A stretch of 25,972 nucleotides of DNA, the filler included, from Pelomyxa schiedti (taxonomy: Eukaryota > Protista > Evosea), in the NCBI GenBank assembly GCA_020536535.1. It is 2 parts of 2 records of this genome, joined end to end, with 100 filler letters (N's around TTAATTAATTAA, not from the genome) between each part and the next. Parts side by side here need not be neighbours in the genome. Positions count along the whole stretch, not along the records: positions 1 to 20,516 come from JAHLWZ010001088.1; 1 more part is not named here. The stretch is one strand, 5' to 3'. The position numbers and the translations under genes were made by a program. Positions within the stretch are counted from its first letter, which is position 1. Every line of letters starts with the position of its first letter. The notes below the pieces were generated by a model. It made no database searches and was not told where the DNA came from. It saw only the letters and a list, made by a program, of their open reading frames with translations. This document shows, piece after piece, positions 2,281-20,516 of this stretch.

Positions 2281-5200
2281 ATGCACAGCACTGAGGGAGC
2301 GTACGAGGAGGTGGCGGGGGGGACAGGCGCCGCGGCGAGTACTAGTACAACCACAACGGCCCGAGGTGATGCCAATGCCGATGGCGGTGGCCAGAGCAAT
2401 CGTACTGATGAACGAGGGGACGCCCCTGTTTTTATACGTAAGAATTATTGGAGGGCAACATATACCTTGGGGGTGACGGTACTTTTGGTTTGGGGTAAGG
2501 GGATTGATTGGCAAAAGATAACCAGAAAAAGCAGGTATCCAACACTGTCCAAAACGGGAATATCTTTCTTACAAGAGATGTGGGACCACTGTTTTGCGTT
2601 GTATCTTCTCCTGGAGCTTCCTGCGCCTGTGCGATGCAAGAGAGAACTCACTCGAGCTCCGAATACAGGGAAATCTTTGCCTTCCTGAGTGATCTGCTTT
2701 CTGTTGCTGAGGGAGTTCCTCCTTATACCTCCCCTGTGTTGTCATCACAAGACAACAACGGAGGTACCAGCACCGTTACTACTTTACCTGTGACGGACTT
2801 TTCCTCCTTTGTTGGACCACCCCAGAGTTTGGAGGAATATCTTGGCAAGATTCAGGACTCATATTTTGGATTGAGGGGAGAGGTTACCACCATTGGTCCA
2901 TCATTGGGGAGACAACTTCTCCTTCCCATTTGTGAAGTCTCTATTGAAGGCTGTCTTGTTGGCCTCATGGGATCATACACGATTGCTTACACGTTCCGCA
3001 ACTGCACAGAGCTCCCTCTGGAAACCACATTTCGCTTTCCTTTATGGGGCCAGTTTCCTACCTTGAAGGGTTTCAGTGCTGACATGAACGGGAATTTAAT
3101 CTCTGGTATGTGTTACCGAAAGGAGCGCTCTTTTACTATGTGAGAGAAAACCCTCCTCTCGTAAACAATATCTCTCCTATTTTCTTGGGAAATTTACATT
3201 GATACTAGACACAACAATCCAATTGCTTCAGGTCTGTCTCGTTTTCTGCTTGAACCGGACAGCGATGACGTTTTACAACTATCACTTGGAAATTTAGCAC
3301 CAGGGGCCCAAGCAAAAATATTGGTTGAATGTGTTACTCAACTTTCCTCAGTAAATGTGGGCAATGGAAAGCAGCTCAGAAAGTTCGTAATTCCTTCAAG
3401 GGCTGGTATTACATTCTCATCCTTCTTCCTGCATTTACTTTCTCCCAGTTTATTTTTTCCGCACTGAAGCCTACAAACATTCTCGGGAAGGACTGCAAGA
3501 GCATAATATTAACTGCTGGCCACTTCGCCTTTCCCTTGATATCCGTGTGCCTAACTATACTCTTTTTGTTCGTATTAATTTAAAAAAGGAATGCCTTGCA
3601 AGGCATGTTCCATTGAATCTCCGTCACATGAGGCTCAAATATTGGTATGATGTTGAGTGTGATTACCTTCTGCAACTAAGGAGTTACCTATTTTCTTTTT
3701 CAAGGTTAACAGATCAGAGATTGAAGGAATTGCCAATTTGAGGTGCCACTGTGATGCACTCCATAAAGAAGTAGATTTCTCTTTGGTTATCACTGTCAGT
3801 GAGACGCCAACAGCTGTTATGTATTCAGAGTACAGCCCCCAGCACAACTCTACGTGCATTGCTGTGATTTCTCCCAGCGTCAGTGCGCCACAGAAGCTGT
3901 GCTCCAACGATGACGCGACTGCACAAAGGGAAATTGTACGTATATCCCCCTTTGTTTTAACTTCTATTGCTTCACGATCGTGTGGGTTGAAACTCACTCT
4001 TTCTTTTTTTTTTTTTTGGAAAAAGATCCTCTTGCTTGACCAAAGTGTGTCAATGCGTGGTTACACCATCGCAGGTGCTGCCAGAGCTTTGCTGTTATTT
4101 CTCCATTCAATTCCTGTGTGTAATTCGTTAACTAAGTCCTTGGATTGCTGTTAACATCCACTGCTAGATTGGAACCCGAATGAATATTATTTGGCATTTC
4201 CCAAGAGAAAAAAACCTAAATCAATAACTCAATCAGGTTTGGAACAACATTTTCTTTGATGCACGAAGACAGTGTTTGCTACTCTCAAGCAGAGCTGGAA
4301 CGGGCAACTGTGGAAGTGACAAAGATGAAATGTGCCAATATGGGGAGTACACAGCTGTTGGAACCTCTTGTCCACGTTCTGGGAAAACCGTTTGCAGTAG
4401 ATACCTCGACTAGGTTTGACAAAAAGAAAGGGTCACAGTGCTAATTCCTTCAGGAACGTTGTTGTCATAACGAATGGTGCCGTACAGAACACCGAGGAAG
4501 TGCTGACTGCGGTGTCATCTGCCAGGATGAGAGATAGTAGGTGCCATGTATTTGCACTCGGAATTGACGGCTGTTCGAAATTGCTTATTGATGGTCTCGC
4601 CTTTTCAGGTGATGGTGCATCTGAATATGTTCGAGTTCCAGAAAGAATTGAAACCAAGGCAGATTCTCCATTCATCGTGGTATAAATAATGAAATCAACA
4701 ACCAGGTCATGAGCCTGGTAAAAACCATTCTTCAAGACCGTGTCACCAAGCAAACTTTTACCTGGAGTCCAAGGTTGAATGTCCTGACGACTTTTCCAGA
4801 GGGCTTCCGGGTCAAAAACAACTGCACAACCATGGTTTTTGGTTTGATCTCTGGAAGGTATTCTCTGATATTCATTTGTTTTCTCCTCACCGTAAATATA
4901 TTCCTTCTACACTCAGAGTTGAGCTCAATGAAGATAGTGCAATTACTGAGGGATTTTCATTCTCTGGCGAATTAAGGGGCACAGCTTGCAATTCTCGGAG
5001 TGCCCTTCATTCAAATTTCTTTTTATCGGATGGAGATATGCTTCACTGCCTTGGCGTATGGTATGACTACCTCTTTTTTTTTCTGGGTTCTAATTTGCTT
5101 CTCTCTTGATTTTATGTATTATTATATGCAGGGAACAGATAAAAGAGTTGGAGAGTTCCTTTACATCAGTACGACCAACGAACCTTACACAGCAACAACT

Positions 5201-7259: not shown

Positions 7260-8545
7260 ATGACGGACCACCACAACGACGACACGAAACCACCGTGGAC
7301 ACCGAAAGCATTTCCCCAAGGGGCGTCGTGTGAGGTGACACTTCGATTTCGCGACCAGATGGTTGCCCTGTTGATGTCCACTCACCCTCGTTGTGGTGTT
7401 GGTGGTGGCGGTCGCCTGGCGTCATTGTCACATCTGATGAGCCGACAAGCTGCGATCAGGTGCTGGAGTGGATCAGGGGATGTCCCACAATGTTCTTCTG
7501 CCTAAACGCCCCCGTTATGTCCAAGGCCAACGTGATCACATTTGAGGTTTCACCACTGATGGAGTCAATCACAAGTGAGGTACTCTGCTGGCGTGATGAC
7601 AGGCCCTATCATGATGTGGTATGCGTCAACGGCAGCAGTGTCCTTTCGCAGTTTCAGTCAATGACAACATTAAGTCTGCATTCAAGGGACAGACTTGATA
7701 CTGGTGAAGAATTGACGGAATGGAGCCCTGGTTTTAGTCGTGACGTATGTGTGAATGGAAAGTGGTTTATCACGGTGAGTGAGGAAAGGCGGCTGGCCAT
7801 AACACCCCTTTATCTGAAGCACGAGGGTGCGGCTGTTGGTCACCACCCAACACACGAAATTGATTGTCCTCAGGTTCCTTTTGAAGATACTGTTAAATTG
7901 GTATTCAACCACGCTGTCCCTGATGAAGCACTGCTTGCCAGGTTTCACCTTTTCCCTGAATACAGCAGTGCCCAGGCACAACTGACTGTGTTTGACGTGG
8001 CACAATCGTGGTCAGAAAACAAGTTAATTGAATTGAGTTCTACCACCACCATGTTGTATCTTCCTATGATCACAAATGTACAGGCTCCGCTGGATACCAT
8101 CTCATGCCTGGTTCTCACAAAGAGGAACGGTGCTCATGCATTGTTAATATGTTCAAAGGCCTTTGCATGTGGCACTTTTATTGAAGTTGAAGAGAAAACT
8201 GGCCGGCAAACCACACTGACCTGTGAGCCCTCTATTAAAGGGCTCTATCATTTGACTGCATCCTTTTTTTCTGTTGCAACTAGCAGGGGGCTTTGCATTT
8301 GGGACTACAACCACACATGCCGCCTACTCGCAGTTATTTCACTCTCTGATGCGACTGTGAGTTCATTTTCAGAAGGGAGCCTCCTGTTCATCAGGGAGTA
8401 TAAGATGGGGGTCCATAACTGTGTTCTCAAAGTGATACCATACAATACATCATGGTTGTCATTGGGCAGGCCTCTTCTTTGCATCACTTTGCCTCAGCTA
8501 GGAAGGATGGACGCCTTCTCACTTTCCAGCACCAGTACAATGTAA
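7260..8545 (+). CDS. Uncharacterised protein of an apparently lineage-expanded family (N-terminal RDQxxALxxSTHPRCG motif), with a frame discontinuity near 7420-7450
   Basis: ORF 7260-7505 has the ATG and the RDQMVALLMSTHPRCG motif. ORF 7391-8545 (different frame) carries DQVLEWIRG...TFEVSPLM and a long beta-rich body (VCVNGKWFITV, GLCIWDYN). No introns in the long ORF. Confidence 0.6.
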
Positions 8546-8695
8546 AATGCAAGATACCCTTTGTAGTCCTGACAATGACCGTTCTTGAATGTTCCGGACC
8601 TTTGATAATGACGAGGTACTTTCATTGATCTTTGTTCCACCCCAGTGAGTTCTTTTCGCTCCGAAAGCAGACAATCAAACAAAGAACCCTACGTG

Positions 8696-10026
8696 ATGGC
8701 TACCCTGCCCAACAGCGATGATGACGGCCCCAAGTCGAAAATCAGAGTTGTCATACTCTATTACAGCCTCACGGGCAACACCAGACACACAGCTGAGAAA
8801 ATTGCCCAGGGCCTCCAGTCACTCAAGGTGAATAACCTAGCTGTATTCACGACGAGGGTTTTCCCGGTTGTGCCGGTGATCAGGGAGACGTATTTCGGCG
8901 GACCACCCCCGCCGCAGAATTGTGGGTCACAAGCACTCGGTGAGGCCCTTGCTTGGGCCCAAGTTATTGGATGTGGAACTCTGTGTGTTACATTGAAGGC
9001 AACAGGGGGAATCTCACAGTTCCTATGTGATGTATGTTCAACCAACCCCCCCCTCTGCTTTCTTTTTGTTCTGATGTTCTTCATCTGAGTAGTTACCACC
9101 CTCACTTGTTGCTGGAAAACCGGGGTTTGTTTTCACTACTGCGGGGCAGGGAATTGGAGAAAGTAATGCCACTCTGGCTGAATCACTGGCAAAGGCTGGA
9201 GTAAAGCCGGTGCTGTCTCAGTGGGAACTGCTTCTATGTCCGGACACTGGAATGTGGTTCTTACCAAAGAAGCCAAAACGGTTGCTGTGGGGGTCCAATG
9301 TAATCGAGAAAGCCACTGCTTATGGAAAACAGCTCGGGGTACAGCTGCAGCAGTACTTTTTGGATGGAAGAAATGCCACTAGTGTGGTGAAGGAAGGTGT
9401 TACCTCTCATATCAGGAGTCTCGAGGAGGACAGAGCCCAAGGCAGAACTGTACTTGCTCCCCCTTCTCTTGCATTCCTAATGTCGGCTCAGGTTAGGCGT
9501 CTGCTCATCCCGGCAATAATATGTGATACTGCACACTGTGTAAAGTGTGGGAAATGCGCACACTCATGCCCAACGAACTCCATGACATTTTCCAAAGGTG
9601 AATTTCCAGTATGGAGAAAGGATTCCTGTTCTGGCGTATGTTTTTCGCGTCATATCCTCATTACTTAAATGCAGTGTTTCCATTAGTGCACAGCATGCAT
9701 TGCCAACTGCCCAGCAGAGGCACTTTATGTTGAAAATATGAGGCACAAACAATACTGGAGATTCCGCGAAGATAATGTCAGAGGTAGTGCCAAAGCTCCA
9801 CTTCTCCTTATTCACACTCTTGAACAGAGGGTGACAATAACTGGTCAAAACGTGATCTCTGGTAACTCCCTTTTGTTTTCCTTCCCAAAATTCCAACACA
9901 ACTAACAGGGTCTGGGCTTTGAGTGCCGCAATTTGGAGGATTGCCTCGTCGACTAAATTGCGGAGTTGTTTCCTGCTCTCAATCACCATCATTATTGCCG
10001 CTTTGGCTCTGGTGTTCTGGAAGTGA
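8696..10026 (+). CDS. EFR1-like flavodoxin-2[4Fe-4S] ferredoxin fusion, copy 1, with C-terminal transmembrane tail
   Basis: Flavodoxin phosphate loop ILYYSLTGNTRHTAEKIA and GKPGFVFTTAG. Ferredoxin motifs CVKCGKCAHSCP and CSG|CTACIANCP (intron 9636-9686). Last exon ends ...KLRSCFLLSITIIIAALALVFWK* (TGA 10024-10026). Five introns. Confidence 0.88.
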
Positions 10027-10149
10027 TGAGTACATCTATACTGAATACATATCACTTGCTCCGGCAAACGAATTTCCTCGTGCCCCGACAAATTCTTCGT
10101 TGTCTTCATCACTCTTAAAAGGGGGAAAAATGAACCGACACCGGTATCG

Positions 10150-11524
10150 ATGACGACTACAAAAAGCGATTCTAGCAATGGCGATGATGGGAGGTCGTCG
10201 TGTCACGTTGTGATTCTGTGCTACAGCCTCACAGGCAACACACGGCACGCCGCCGACAAAATCGCACACGCTCTCGAATCCGTCAAAAATGGAGGTGGAA
10301 GTGGGGGCGATGGAAGGGCGTTCACGGCGAGGGTTTTTGAGATTGTGCCGGTGATCAAGGAGATGTATTACGGGGGACCGCCGGCGCCACAGAATTGTGG
10401 GACACAAGCACTGGCTGAGGCGCTATCTTGGGCGCACGTTGTTGGGTGTGGGACCATGTGTGTGTTCCTCAATGCCACTGGTGGAATATCTCAGTTCCTG
10501 TGTGATGTATGTTATGTTGTGTTGTAAGTGGTTAGTGGGGGTGCGTGAGAATGAGACCTTGGTGTTGTATTTGTTGAACGGTGTGTTCTAATGTTATCCA
10601 CGCAGTTACCGCCAGCACTGGTTGCTGGGAAGCCGGGGTTTGTTTTCACCACGGCGGGGCAAGCAACTGGGTCAAGCAATGCAACTCTTGCTGAATCACT
10701 GGCGAAGGCCGGAGTAAAGCCGGTGCTGTCTCAGTGGGAAATGATTCTGTGCCCTGACACTGCCGTGTGGTGCCTACCAACCAGGCCAAAACGGTTGCTG
10801 TGGGGTTCTAATGTCATTGAGACAGCCACTGCTTATGGAAAACAGCTCGGAGTTCAGCTGCAACAATATTTATCGACCGGAAAAAATGGAGCTAGTCTGG
10901 TGCGAGAAGGTGCTAGCTCTCACATCAGGAGCATTACTAAAGACAAGTCTCTGGCCAAGAGGGTATTTTCATTTCTTCGCCTCTTTTCCCTGGGTTCACT
11001 TTGTATAGTACCGGCCGTTAAGTGTGCCAGCGGTATTGTGCGATACTGATAAGTGTCTAAAGTGTGGAAAATGCGCTTTCTCATGCCCGACAAACTCCAT
11101 GACTTTCTCGAAAGGAGAATTCCCAGTTTGGGGAAAGGAGTCCTGCACAGCCGTATGTTTTTCTTGTTCTCTCCATCATGATTTCTAATTTTTTGATTGT
11201 AGTGCACAGCCTGTGTTGCCAACTGTCCGGCCGATGCACTTTATGTTTCGGGGATGAAGCACAAGCAGTTCTGGCGATTCCACAAAGAAAATGTCAAAGG
11301 TTTCTCGACCATTCCTTTTTTTTCGCTCTGAAATGCTCCACAGAGGGGGACAACAACTGGACACTATGGGAAATGAGGTTTTTTCCCCCTTTTATGCTTT
11401 AACCAACAACAGGGGCTGGACTTGCCGCTCAGCACTGTGGAGGGCTGTAACATCCAAGAAATTGATGACTGGGCTTCTCTTAACCCTCGTTTTATTCCTT
11501 CTTCTGTGCCACTTGCTGCACTGA
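10150..11524 (+). CDS. EFR1-like flavodoxin-2[4Fe-4S] ferredoxin fusion, copy 2 (tandem paralog), with C-terminal transmembrane tail
   Basis: ILCYSLTGNTRHAADKIA; CLKCGKCAFSCP; CTA|CTACVANCP. Exons 10150-10506, 10606-10962, 11009-11152, 11203-11299, a short exon from 11344, and a last exon ending ...KKLMTGLLLTLVLFLLLCHLLH*. Intron positions are equivalent to copy 1. Confidence 0.88.
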
Positions 11525-11596
11525 AGTCCCTATCTAATGCATAGTTAAAACTATTCCATTTTATCTGTGTCTGTTCGATTTTCAATTCTGTGAATA

Positions 11597-13637
11597 ATGA
11601 CAGACCAGCAAGCCAACCACCAGCCGGATGCGCCGTACTCTCCCCCCGCCGACGACGATGTGGTAATTATCCCGCCGCCCCTCGGTGCTCCCTCTCCCTC
11701 CGCGCTGCTTCTTCGTAATGATGCGGGCAGCAACAGCAGGGCGGAAGGCAGCGGCCGGTTGGGGTGCCCCAGCGAGGCCACGGGGATTGCCGAGGGCCCA
11801 GGCGCGGGCACGGGCGGGGGCGTGGCCGTGGGCGAGGGATGTGGCGGGAGCGGGGCCAGGGTGGGAGTGGGAGCGGGAGCGGGAGTGGCGGTGGGGGGTG
11901 CGGGGTACCACGCCAACGTGGACAACAACCAGGGGGGTATTATGGGATGCCAGGGGAGAGGGGGTGGTGGCGGAGATTGTTGTTGCTGCTGTGGGTGCAC
12001 TGCCGGGGGGGATGCTAACGGCAATGGCAATGGTAATTGTGGGAGGTTGGATCCTGTATCACCCTCATCATCGTCGTGTGGTGGCAGTGGTGGTGGTGGT
12101 GGTGTGATGAATGGAGATATGGAGGGGTCCGCCGCCGCTGCTGTAACAAATACCGGAAGTGATTGTTATTCTTCATCTAAAACCGGAAAGAGAGTCTTTG
12201 ATAGGAGAAGAGCTGAAAGCTGTATGTCTATTCTATTTCCCGAGAAAAAGATTGCCTAACCGATTATAAGCGAGACGCAAGCACTCAGTGGCTCAAAACC
12301 AGACACCTTCGTTAGAAAACATGTCTGTCAGCACTTGCTTGCAACATCTTCAAATGGTAAGACCTTCTGTTGTACTACATACGTTGGCATTAAAAAAAGG
12401 CATTTGAGCTTTTAGATTGAATCAGCAAGTTTGAGGCTTCTCATATGGTCCGTGAACACTCAAGGATGCCGAAGCCTTTACAGTTCTGTTGCCAATGAAA
12501 TCGTAGCAAAGGCCTCTGACGTTATTCAAATCGCAAATGCCATAACAGCATTGTCCCCGATAGGACTACAGGTTATCTCTCATTCAGACAAGTCCTTGCA
12601 CTCTTTACTCACGCACAATTAGCAATCTCTTGGTGATATGCTCTTGACCAAGATACAGCTGCCTCACTCATATCTACATCCGTCGCAAAGGGGTAATAGC
12701 ACCCAACAAGAAGTCTTTAATCCGCAGATCAACACGCCTCTCTGCAATAATAACCTCCAAACGTCTCCACATGATCCAATTCTTACTGTTCCCGGCTCTA
12801 CACCGGTGGTCTTACGTCATCACAATTCGAAGCGCAGTCGCCCAACCCCACAATTTTCAGAGTATCACGTACAGGGGACTTGTTCACAGTCACAATACTG
12901 CACGGCATGTTCTCCAGATTCAATTGGGGACATCACTACAACAACCGCAAGTGGACATAACACAGACAGCGGCGTATGTACCACAACAGCCTCAAATTAC
13001 ACTCCAGCGAACTCCACAAGCCACCATTCTATGGGTCTTCCCACCGACAGAAATGAGGAATACAATGTACAGCAACCACCACTTCCTCTATCAGGTACTG
13101 AACTGCCTCGGGAAGCAATTGCGGAGGAACTAAATACTGTCAATCTCCCCTCCGTCTCAGAAAATGGATGCACACCTCCCGCTGACTTTTCCGGTCTGCC
13201 GGCCGTCCGAAAAAAGCACCACTCAAATAAAAAAAAGGTATTCTTACACATTTGAGAATACAGTTCCTTACTCCAACATGCAGCATCACTCGTCAGGAGG
13301 CTCTCATAAGAAAAGGCGTGTAGCACTCAACCGTGGCGCTAATCTCCCCAACACACAACAAACTCCCACAACCGCGCTGTGCCCTCCTTTACAACAATAC
13401 CCTCTGCAACAACACCAAGACCCATCCTCACTTCAACCTCCCCCAGCACCTTCCACAGAATCACAACAACAGCCGGAAATAAGCACAGCAATGTCGGCAC
13501 CTCAAATATCCCTCCCAGAACAACGATACCCCCAGATACCTACACCCACACAACACACAACACACACAACACCTCCCACTGTTGACCAACAGCAAATCCC
13601 CAGTGGTTCAATCCCAATCGACAAGCTCCTTTGTTAA
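11597..13637 (+). CDS. Hypothetical low-complexity protein (Gly-rich N-terminus, short helical middle, Pro/Gln/Thr-rich C-terminus)
   Basis: ATG at 11597 and successive + strand ORFs (11597-12259, 12431-12622, 12638-13255, 13164-13637) separated by GT-AG intron-like segments. No domain recognised. The 3' end could extend to ~13744 through one more intron. Confidence 0.55.
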
Positions 13638-18350: not shown

Positions 18351-20035
18351 TCAAGAAGACTCATTTTCGGGATTATCACCCGTACAATTCATACCCTCCT
18401 GTGCTGTTGTTGTGGACTCGGTTGTAGTTACTGTGTTGGTGGAATCGACAGCAATATCATTGTCATCCGCATTCACTATTCCTTCAGCAGTAATTCTGTA
18501 ATGGCATGTATTTCGGTCAAGGCGAGGGGAAAGACAGACATCAAGCCTTCTACTTTTGCCATTGGTTCCTACTCTTTGGTAAGTTAGAGAGTTTCCTTAA
18601 ATTGCGTGTACGTGAAAGCATCAGCCGGGTGTTGACACAGTGCGACCACATTAGCCCAAGAGTGGGAACATGGTTTTTTAAGTTGTGTAGACCCCAAATT
18701 TGCTGGTTCATGGGGTTGTCATGAAACCAGTCAGTAACCTAGAAATTAGTGATACTAGGAGGTGTAGATAAGGGTGCCAAACCTGGTTCACAATTATCAC
18801 TGGAATTGCGTGTAAAGATGTTATCCTATGAACCGCTTCGGCAATTTTCCACAGTGTAGAAAATTTAGATGCACGTTCCTCCTCCTCCACATCCTCGTAT
18901 TCGTACCTTTAGTACAGGGGTAAATTGACAACCGGGGAAAAATGCGTGTGCTACTGTCTACCGTGTAAGTGCAGCCAAGGAATCTATTACAATCAACTTG
19001 ATATTCTGCTGCGTTATTGTATAATCTAGACTGTAAATGAGTAACGAATGTGCAGTCAAATAGGAATTCCTACTTGCACAAATACTGCAACAGGGGATTG
19101 GTGGCGCGTATTGCCTCTTTAACTAACACTTTATCTGTTGGTGAAGGCAGCCCCTTTTTTTCGTATGTGGAAGCCATTTGCGTTAGTCTCTGTTTGTTAG
19201 TTGATAACTAGGCGGTTCGAAAATAATTTCAGGTGGATTCAGTACATCTATCGGGAAGACTCCATCAGAGTGGAAATACAGCGCGGAACCACCGAGCCCT
19301 CCCATATCCTCTCCCAGTTGCACTTGTAAGCACAGTTGCATGCAAAGTTGGGTCTTGCCGGCTGCGCTCTCACCAAACAGCTCCGTGATCCCGCATACAT
19401 CTATTCCACCCCCCAGTGCTTGATCAATTGCTTCGCACCCGGTGGACAGCTTCTTCTAATAAAACAATTAGACCCACGCGCAGTACTACATCCGAAAATA
19501 TTTGATTGAAGTAAAACAAATAGCTCCTAAAACAAAACAAAACAAAAAAAACTTACATTATAAAGTAAAAAAAAGAAGCACCAAATTTACAAATCAAAGA
19601 CAAATATGGATTTTAGATAACAACCTGGGGGTCCAGGGATAGGGGAATGGGGTTTGCCCAGGGCCCCAGCACATCGGCCGCCACCCCCCGCACCATCCCC
19701 TCCACATCCTCCTCCCTCATACCCCCCGCCGCCGCAGCCCCGCCCATCGCGTCCCGCCCGCCGCGGCCCCTCCCGCACCCGCACCCGCGCGGGCCCATGC
19801 ACAGCGCCCTGCGGTCCGCCTCCGCCATCAGCAACACGCGCCACACGCCCCCCTCGTCGTCTTCCCCGCCCTCCCCCACTGCCGCTGTGTCTCGGGCCGC
19901 CGCGCCCACGCCCCCCCTCGCCTCCGCGTGCCAACACGTGGGCCACAACGCCAGCGGCACGTCCGCCAGCCGCATGCAGTGCCTCTGCGCCAAGTGCCGT
20001 GCCACATCCTCCGGCCTCGGGGGGGCACGTGACAT
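18351..20035 (-). CDS. XRCC3: DNA repair protein XRCC3-like RAD51 paralog
   Basis: Exon 20035-19625, then intron 19624-19456, then KKLSTGCEAIDQALGGGIDVCGITELFGESAAGKTQLCMQLCLQVQL..GGLGGSALY (Walker A). Later exons give KLIVIDSLAAL (Walker B), IPVIIVNQVTD, VPTLGLMWSHCVNTRLMLSR and RRLDVCLSPRL..CHYRITAEGI. Stop TGA at 18353-18351. Confidence 0.85.
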
Positions 20036-20291
20036 CTCACCGTTTCTACTACTTGTTTGGCTGAGGAAACAGTTGATCCCAGAGATCAACAAACCCAGAA
20101 CGAAGATTGTTCGTGTGGAGGTGTGTTCAGCATCACTTCCGTAAGGACGAACTTCATCACCGTCTTTACGGTAACTCTCGGAAGGAGAAACCGCTCTCCT
20201 TCTATAAATAACAAATGTTCGAGTCTAAAGATCGTGATCAGCGTTGTTCCGTGCACAAACACAGAACACAACAAAATTTTCGGGATCGTTG
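20036..20291. promoter_or_regulatory. Probable bidirectional promoter region
   Basis: 256-nt lower-GC interval between divergent ATGs (XRCC3 at 20035 on -, His-rich gene at 20292 on +). Contains TATAAATA near 20203-20210. Confidence 0.4.
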
Positions 20292-20516
20292 ATGAGGCAT
20301 AACAACAGCACCGGTGCGGCTCACCACGACGACACAATCAACGACGGCGACAACAGCGACAACGTCGCCGCAGCGGCGGCGGAGGAGGAGGACAAGGGGG
20401 GGGCCCACCACGCCCGGCACCACAACCACACGAGCAGCAGCAGCAGGCACCACCACCACCACCACGACGGCGGGAGCAGCAGCAGCAAGCACCATCACCA
20501 CCACGCCACCCACTCC
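20292..20516 (+). CDS. 5' fragment of a gene with a His/Ser/acidic low-complexity N-terminus, truncated by the gap
   Basis: ATG at 20292, open to the N-run: MRHNNSTGAAHHDD..AAAAAEEEDKGGAHHARHHNHTSSSSRHHHHHHDGGSSSSKHHHHHATHS. GC-rich like the other first exons here. Confidence 0.5.

Follow-up and report, generated by a model that had tools for sequence, protein, structure and literature searches.

The window analysed here is a stretch of 25,972 nucleotides (nt), filler included, from Pelomyxa schiedti, a free-living anaerobic archamoeba, and our subject is a pair of genes within it that encode predicted tail-anchored flavodoxin–ferredoxin fusion proteins. The pair lies on contig C1088 (JAHLWZ010001088.1) of an assembly of 52.4 Mb in 5337 contigs. 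Six-frame reading of the window reveals two six-exon paralogs arranged head-to-tail on the + strand with a spacing of 123 nt. Gene 1, delimited by its reading frames and GT..AG sites, spans 8696–10026, with exons at 8696–9031, 9093–9449, 9492–9635, 9687–9783, 9828–9861 and 9909–10026; gene 2 spans 10150–11524, with exons at 10150–10506, 10606–10962, 11009–11152, 11203–11299, 11344–11377 and 11413–11524. All 10 introns have GT..AG borders, measure 35–99 nt and fall at matching codon positions in the two genes; exons 2–5 are equal in length in both (357, 144, 97 and 34 nt). Gene 2 is GenBank Pelo_16153 (P0030, 366 amino acids), which carries the database label ‘hypothetical protein’. All of its exon translations are exact consecutive pieces of P0030, so the model given here is the public annotation, tail included. 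The gene 1 product has 361 amino acids provided that its probable second intron is spliced (9450–9491; 42 nt, in frame, no stop codon, GTACTT..CAG). We place an intron there because its position matches that of the RNA-confirmed intron 10963–11008 of gene 2, and its removal equalizes the lengths of exons 2 and 3 between the genes. Gene 1 was analysed exon by exon, and whole-protein analyses used P0030 and the paralog P0001.

In both proteins a flavodoxin-like domain, which bears an SLTGNT loop, is followed by a pair of CxxCxxCxxxCP motifs and a conserved EGDNNW motif; a Trp/Arg-rich helix then leads to an uncharged C-terminal segment of 19–20 residues. Starting from the N terminus of gene 1, the S-L-T-G-N-T loop that would hold the phosphate of flavin mononucleotide (FMN) is read directly at 8765–8782 and the first CxxCxxCxxxCP motif at 9537–9572, where the presumed [4Fe–4S] ligands are cysteines that are invariant in alignments A1–A3. 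The second motif, at 9627–9713, is interrupted by intron 9636–9686, whose counterpart in gene 2 (11153–11202) is spliced in RNA contigs. Introns 4 (9784–9827) and 5 (9862–9908) bracket, within 9784–9908, the 34-nt exon that carries EGDNNW. The hydrophobic helix at the end of gene 1 occupies 9964–10020, where a single Lys separates the 19 uncharged residues from the stop codon at 10024–10026, and that of gene 2 occupies 11462–11521, where 20 uncharged residues run to the last residue of the protein. Across an alignment of 25 sequences, the S, G, N and T of the phosphate loop are nearly invariant, and the eight cysteines of the two CxxCxxCxxxC motifs are invariant; binding of FMN is suggested by this conserved loop. 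The first-pass annotation had described just such a tandem pair, with a flavodoxin fold, two cluster motifs, a Trp-rich linker and a terminal hydrophobic helix, and this description is borne out by sequence reading, AlphaFold2 modelling and hydropathy.

The best-matching NCBIfam model for P0030 is the EFR1 family ferrodoxin (NF038196), which scores 74.7 bits against a cut-off of 75. Exon by exon, gene 1 reaches a sum of approximately 65 bits; the paralogs score 56–64 and the relatives overall 54–89 bits, with 79–89 bits for P0025, P0032, P0006 and P0016 (88.7 for P0025), as compared with 247.6 bits for a bacterial member. Pfam finds only Fer4 (4Fe–4S) families above cut-off in full-length P0030, and single exons give clear Fer4 matches along with sub-threshold flavodoxin matches. 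The alignment profile (A3) matches the solved short-chain flavodoxins 5wid, 1fld and 2fz5 with E values of 9e-11 to 8e-10. A phmmer search with exon 2 of gene 1 against 1.84 billion representatives gave 24 matches at E ≤ 1e-3, none of them a canonical bacterial EFR1.

The AlphaFold2 model of P0030 (pLDDT 90.8, pTM 0.89) shows an alpha/beta domain of the flavodoxin-like type, then a ferredoxin domain, and ends in two helices (residues 326–343 and 345–365). Foldseek matches this model to WrbA, flavodoxins and the flavodoxin-like domains of FprA/flavodiiron proteins (E 4e-8 to 2e-6, probability 1.00). The nearest models in the ESM Atlas belong to bacterial EFR1 clusters and to one Fornicata-rich eukaryotic cluster (TM-score 0.64–0.76), the bacterial EFR1 models matching the two-domain fold at 0.69–0.76 over residues 12–331. 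These Atlas models align within residues 10–332 of P0030 only, and the last 35 residues have no counterpart. Identification of the pair as EFR1-like, made in the first-pass annotation, thus gains from both the NF038196 top match and the fold match, and the window proteins are supported as divergent EFR1-like flavodoxin–ferredoxin fusions. The domain order is that of bacterial EFR1, a flavodoxin-like N terminus with an xxTGNx loop followed by two CxxCxxCxxxCP motifs. True members, however, score approximately 250 bits, share only about 20–27% identity with the window proteins and are compact, at about 240–290 amino acids, whereas the window proteins have introns and approximately 40–70 extra C-terminal residues comprising EGDNNW, an amphipathic helix and a predicted transmembrane helix.

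In the window proteins, at least 72 residues follow the last cluster motif and end in the hydrophobic helix. The last uncharged stretch of gene 1 has 19 residues followed by a single residue (Lys), with a mean Kyte–Doolittle hydropathy of 2.51, and that of gene 2 has 20 residues followed by none, with a mean of 2.25. The best 17-residue hydropathy window in the whole of P0030 is residues 349–365 of 366 (2.50). Basic flanks precede the tails (...SSTKLR and ...TSKK, the upstream flank of gene 1 being net +2), and the region before them is rich in tryptophan, with 5 Trp in the 50 residues ahead of the P0030 tail as compared with 10 in all 366. The N termini, MATLPNSDDDGPK... and MTTTKSDSSNGDDG..., are hydrophilic and acidic and run directly into the first beta-strand; by inspection, neither contains a signal peptide or presequence. 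By hydropathy, each protein thus has the layout of a tail anchor, a single hydrophobic segment within approximately 30 residues of the C terminus.

This layout extends well beyond the pair. Fifteen eukaryote-type proteins and the last exon of gene 1 each have an uncharged stretch of 12–27 amino acids located 0–13 residues from the C terminus, with a flank that is usually net positive. The layout is found in three other close Pelomyxa paralogs on contigs C71, C793 and C297, in Mastigella eilhardi, where the sequence is from a transcriptome and hence from mRNA, in Paratrimastix pyriformis, in a 349-amino-acid metagenome protein and in eight metagenome or Logan proteins. Between genes 1 and 2, the ratio of non-synonymous to synonymous substitution rates (dN/dS) is 0.10–0.32 per exon with dS of 0.7–2.0, which indicates that the duplication is old and that both copies have stayed under constraint. 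Comparison of gene 2 with three paralogs over the first 33 codons of the tail exon gives dN/dS of 0.24–0.41, and across the five close Pelomyxa paralogs purifying selection acts on this exon. When the tail region alone (P0030 residues 296–366) was used in a word-indexed search, only P0030 itself and one paralog were returned, with no donor for the tail module.

A hydrophobic helix need not be a membrane anchor; it could pack on the protein or drive oligomerization, leaving the protein soluble, as are most bacterial EFR1 proteins. AlphaFold2 confidence in the two terminal helices is high (block means 86–96), possibly reflecting packing, and the segment is missing in some family members. We nonetheless regard a purely packing role as quite improbable. 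With 15–22 uncharged residues at a mean hydropathy of 2.0–2.9, flanked by Lys or Arg and ending 0–13 residues from the C terminus, the segment has the textbook layout of a tail anchor, its sequence drifts while its hydrophobicity is maintained across Archamoebae and metamonads, and no bacterial model aligns beyond residue 332.

Transcript evidence comes from one study of Pelomyxa schiedti, whose three single-cell RNA runs and single DNA run were compared with positions 8500–11700; the depth of the RNA contigs is approximately 3–5, from one single-cell sample, at which minor forms are hidden in contigs. Both genes are expressed, and 6 of the 10 introns are seen spliced: introns 4 and 5 of gene 1 and introns 1–4 of gene 2. 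RNA over gene 1 starts at exon 4, exons 1–3 being without a contig. The gene 1 contig (X2 record 3) joins 9721–9781, 9826–9860 and 9908–10056, leaving out 44 and 47 nt at GT..AG joints, and spans the hydrophobic exon in frame to end 30 nt past the stop codon. In gene 2, RNA joints connect 10506/10606, 10962/11009, 11152/11203 and 11299/11344, two of these four being seen in two runs.

Pelomyxa schiedti has five close paralogs on four contigs, the tandem pair included, and at least three to four distant ones besides. One of the paralogs of the window genes is KAH3767233.1, ‘hypothetical protein Pelo_891 [Pelomyxa schiedti]’. The metagenome relatives lie on intron-poor contigs, where their neighbours include DUF747, histone deacetylase, methionine gamma-lyase-type and ankyrin-repeat genes. 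We treat these relatives as coming from metamonad-like eukaryotes on the basis of this contig context and of the Atlas clusters, which name Preaxostyla and Fornicata.

For comparison with bacteria we surveyed 301 genomes of one phylum (Bacillota), reached via an Oscillospiraceae EFR1 protein. EFR1 is present in 56 of the 301, with 81 matches. None of the 30 best of these 81 matches has a hydrophobic C terminus; 21–52 residues follow the last motif, with a 17-residue Kyte–Doolittle maximum of at most 0.48. Seven bacterial EFR1 proteins from protein searches are likewise tail-less, with 28–39 hydrophilic residues past the second cluster motif. Among the lower-scoring matches with long open frames, ten were examined and 4 of these have a C-terminal extension of 104–131 amino acids. 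These four (L048, L054, L055 and L056, from genomes G108, G226, G064 and G255) are 342–382 amino acids long; behind the ferredoxin domain they carry two or three hydrophobic segments and then a hydrophilic end of the RY(H/L/K)(E/A)P type of approximately 25–45 residues. Since a hydrophilic end follows the inserted segments, we read these as a transmembrane hairpin and not as a tail anchor. They resemble the window proteins in having a flavodoxin–ferredoxin core with hydrophobic segments after the ferredoxin domain; unlike in the window proteins, these segments precede the RYHEP-type end. To our knowledge, no membrane-embedded subtype of bacterial EFR1-like proteins has been described. The premise of the first-pass annotation that EFR1 proteins are soluble agrees with the 30 best Bacillota matches and needs a caveat for the 4 of approximately 81 that carry internal hydrophobic segments.

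A maximum-likelihood tree was calculated from 42 cores, each trimmed 10 residues past the last cluster motif to keep the tail from affecting the topology. All 15 eukaryote-type rows fall in one clade with support of 97/94, nested among bacterial EFR1-like proteins. Next to this clade lie a single bacterial row on a long branch and a tail-less group of the Oscillospiraceae/Treponema primitia type. A split with 100/98 support sets the eukaryote clade and these neighbours apart from canonical EFR1, among which the transmembrane-hairpin forms fall; membrane attachment thus appears to have evolved in the bacterial forms independently of the eukaryotic tail. An earlier tree of 25 rows recovered the same groupings, its eukaryote/bacteria split being weakly supported (75/81). 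The topology would fit one transfer from bacteria to eukaryotes, with the tail module gained inside eukaryotes and the gene spread among anaerobic lineages, the number and direction of transfers being read from a tree without a root and with narrow sampling. The phylogeny that had been proposed as a check, with Archamoebae and prokaryotic homologs, accordingly returned a single eukaryote clade, and the nearest bacterial group in it is tail-less. The proposal behind that check, namely that a redox module was acquired by transfer, carries introns and gained a eukaryotic tail anchor, is well supported by the spliced introns, the 97/94 clade and the tail-less bacterial neighbours.

With bacteria as the nearest non-eukaryotic relatives, contamination by a bacterial sequence, or a transferred gene that has since decayed, has to be considered, and either is vanishingly unlikely. 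Each gene has five spliceosomal introns, with splicing seen in RNA, the contig contains other eukaryotic-looking genes, five paralogs lie on four contigs and dN/dS is 0.1–0.3. The spliced transcripts and the dN/dS values rule out both the contamination and the pseudogene readings.

We consider it fairly probable that each gene encodes a tail-anchored, cytosol-facing FMN/iron–sulfur (Fe–S) redox protein, built on a bacterial EFR1-like scaffold to which a eukaryote-specific C-terminal module has been added. The core would be an FMN-type flavodoxin-like domain fused to a clostridial-type ferredoxin domain with two [4Fe–4S] clusters. The added module, of approximately 70 amino acids, would comprise EGDNNW, the Trp/Arg-rich amphipathic helix, the basic flank and a terminal transmembrane helix of 15–22 residues. 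As there is no N-terminal signal, insertion would be post-translational, into an endomembrane (the endoplasmic reticulum (ER)) or the outer membrane of a mitochondrion-related organelle or peroxisome, and would place the Fe–S clusters and FMN adjacent to the membrane surface. A Get3/ArsA homolog is encoded on contig G000:C439, which makes the machinery for tail-anchor insertion plausible; a search for Pex19 gave no match in Pelomyxa schiedti, nor in the control genomes. Low-potential electrons, for example from pyruvate:ferredoxin oxidoreductase (PFO), ferredoxin or hydrogenase, may pass to the clusters, on to FMN and then to a membrane-proximal acceptor, or in reverse. Cofactor loading, membrane insertion, the identity of the membrane and the donors and acceptors are features that we infer. 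We think it most likely that a single transfer from bacteria brought the scaffold to anaerobic eukaryotes, with the tail added early in the eukaryotic clade and the family expanded in Pelomyxa.

A number of observations count against this assignment. No Pfam flavodoxin model passes the cut-off on P0030 or on single exons, the domain being too divergent, and the prediction that the C-terminal tail is a membrane anchor draws solely on its hydropathy and position. The tail is reduced to a weak 12-residue stretch in the Mastigamoeba homolog, and three distant Pelomyxa paralogs (Pelo_11806, Pelo_10157 and Pelo_1044) are tail-less as annotated, which may be a real loss or may reflect 3′ exons missing from the annotation. 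In Monocercomonoides, MONOS_4172 was scored ‘not TA’ in a tail-anchor screen (Novak et al., PMC10703272). The bacterial sampling is essentially of Bacillota and leaves out an Atlas cluster of 345-amino-acid bacterial proteins, mostly Spirochaetota. No result computed here points to a particular partner, donor, acceptor or organelle. Finally, the last intron of gene 2 (11378–11412, 35 nt) is retained in both of the RNA contigs that cover it, X1 record 2 being continuous over 11342–11545 and X3 record 6 over 11342–11398. In the retained form the frame ends ...EMRFFPPFML, with TAA at 11398–11400, so that the predicted product is tail-less. The first-pass claim that the tail emerges upon splicing is borne out in RNA for gene 1, where the last two introns are removed and the tail exon is in frame, and not in the available contigs of gene 2. 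Given the low depth, a spliced form of gene 2 may coexist with the intron-retained one.

The retained intron could also be functional. All five close paralogs have this last intron, 35–55 nt long and at the same phase-2 site, and in all five its retention leads to a stop within 1–12 codons, so that a conserved short intron could be a point of regulated retention, where splicing would yield an anchored form and retention a soluble form ending a few residues past EGDNNW. By extension, gene 2 may encode mainly a soluble carrier and gene 1 an anchored one. Two contigs from two runs retain the intron, although the same contig lacks three other introns, and the gene 1 contig is fully spliced. At a depth of approximately 3–5 from a single-cell sample, however, contigs can mask spliced minor forms, and the retained form may be merely incompletely processed RNA. 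Moreover, the purifying selection on the gene 2 tail exon noted above (dN/dS 0.24–0.41) implies that it is translated. A switch of this kind seems unlikely to us.

Returning to the tail-anchored redox protein, its role could be that of a membrane-bound enzyme as opposed to a carrier, that is, a WrbA-like FMN reductase with ferredoxin-type input that reduces quinones, oxygen, nitro compounds or other small acceptors in detoxification or oxygen stress. The solved structures that match best are two quinone reductases, WrbA and PnpB, together with the flavodoxin-like domain of flavodiiron oxygen reductases, and bacteria have independently evolved membrane-embedded versions. Candidate relatives, the ‘flavodoxin-related’ genes of Spironucleus, are induced by oxygen up to 2^7-fold (PMC6397501). 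In Spironucleus salmonicida there are seven such genes, described as ‘short-chain flavodoxin-related’ (OG5_127162; Giardia has an ortholog), with induction up to log2 7.2, and their products were proposed to be cytosolic electron carriers for PFO (PMC6397501). The resemblance to WrbA, other flavodoxin-like quinone reductases and short-chain flavodoxins is confined to the flavodoxin-like fold in the N-terminal 200 residues, with a TM-score by query of 0.30–0.36 (for WrbA) and 11–21% identity, whereas the window proteins have a large insertion, a fused ferredoxin domain and a membrane tail. No quinone-related context was found. The enzyme role is therefore doubtful, and we favour the electron carrier.

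Among tail-anchored electron carriers, cytochrome b5, which resides in the ER and the outer membrane of mitochondria, offers an analogous topology, with a cytosolic redox domain, a short linker, a single C-terminal transmembrane helix and few lumenal residues. There is no homology between the two, and FMN and Fe–S clusters in place of heme would likely confer much lower potentials. The Pelomyxa schiedti genome has at least three cytochrome b5-domain matches and at least two diflavin-reductase FAD domains (FAD_binding_1) above cut-off. As Pelomyxa retains its b5-domain genes, there has been no substitution by loss, and the genome content argues against the idea that the pair stands in for a lost cytochrome b5/P450-reductase system, since no carrier is missing that would have to be replaced. 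The earlier suggestion of a ‘heme-free counterpart of cytochrome b5/P450 reductase’ is speculative, and the retained b5 and diflavin genes weaken it further.

Members of this family have been noticed before. Fe–S proteins of Preaxostyla include ‘flavodoxin-ferredoxin domains containing proteins’, a group for which the pathway is given as ‘?’ and no tail anchor is mentioned (Novak et al. 2023, PMC10703272). Paratrimastix KAJ4458125.1, which is P0025 and is named ‘flavodoxin-ferredoxin fusion protein’, lies inside the 97/94 eukaryote clade and carries a hydrophobic stretch of 18 residues that stops 11 residues short of the C terminus, at approximately 30% identity to the window proteins. In the supplement of the Preaxostyla study, the Paratrimastix pyriformis genes PAPYR_7260 and PAPYR_7261 have consecutive locus tags and a common query identifier (PMC10703272), which suggests that they too form a tandem pair. 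The Mastigamoeba balamuthi gene m51a1_g6092 likewise counts among the orthologs. Within the open-access literature, no account of a tail anchor on the flavodoxin–ferredoxin fusion family came to light, and nothing on the function of EFR1. What appears to be new here, judging from the sequences, is a eukaryote-specific, tail-anchored branch of the known EFR1-like fusions.

Schemes of electron flow in anaerobic protists usually feature small ferredoxins that are soluble. A conserved and expanded family of membrane-tethered flavodoxin–ferredoxin proteins, with five close copies in Pelomyxa, several in Preaxostyla and probably several in Fornicata, would supply a missing component of that flow and a target for localization and biochemistry. 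As a tentative extension, the anaerobic eukaryotes (Archamoebae and Metamonada) might share a eukaryote-invented, tail-anchored FMN/Fe–S hub, so far undescribed, that delivers electrons of very low potential to the cytosolic surface of an organelle (the ER, the mitochondrion-related organelle or the anaerobic peroxisome) and links cytosolic PFO or hydrogenase to membrane acceptors, with retention of the last mini-intron possibly toggling between soluble and anchored forms. The family would also exemplify how a bacterial gene is fitted to the eukaryotic cell after transfer, through the gain of introns and a tail anchor, where some bacteria used an inserted transmembrane hairpin. Low-potential flavin and Fe–S proteins activate nitro-drugs in related parasites, so that the family, should homologs occur in those parasites, may bear on drug action.

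Within gene 2, the stretch 10176–10550 (+ strand) is common to the Pelo_3881 paralog (G000:C297, L005, reverse strand) and looks like a gene-conversion tract or a mosaic. Positions 10176–10506 are 94.6% identical to that paralog, as compared with 70–77% for the other exons, and 41 nt of intron 1 are identical. At this tract the DNA and RNA contigs fragment and carry variant letters, with a loose end at 10176. The GenBank model of Pelo_3881 (P0031, 298 amino acids) begins at an internal Met (MYYGG...), and upstream of it, in frame, lies a full flavodoxin N terminus that includes the SLTGNT loop, so the public model seems to lack its N-terminal part. A distant family member, P0011 on G000:C253 (L009), is annotated as the N-terminal half of a 481-amino-acid ‘nuclear cap-binding protein subunit 2’, probably two adjacent genes fused by annotation.

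Elsewhere in the window, a 384-amino-acid open frame at 7391–8545 has no Pfam match. The open frame at 2508–3143 (+) has a weak match to VIT_2 (vault protein inter-alpha-trypsin; E 1.6e-4, 21.9 bits against a cut-off of 23) and may belong to a large multi-exon gene upstream of the gene pair. Another open frame, at 11597–12259 (+), begins 73 nt past gene 2 and encodes Gly/Cys/Ala-rich low-complexity sequence. Towards the end of the contig, 19000–20500 is GC-rich (0.54–0.59), with long open frames on both strands that are typical of low-complexity sequence.

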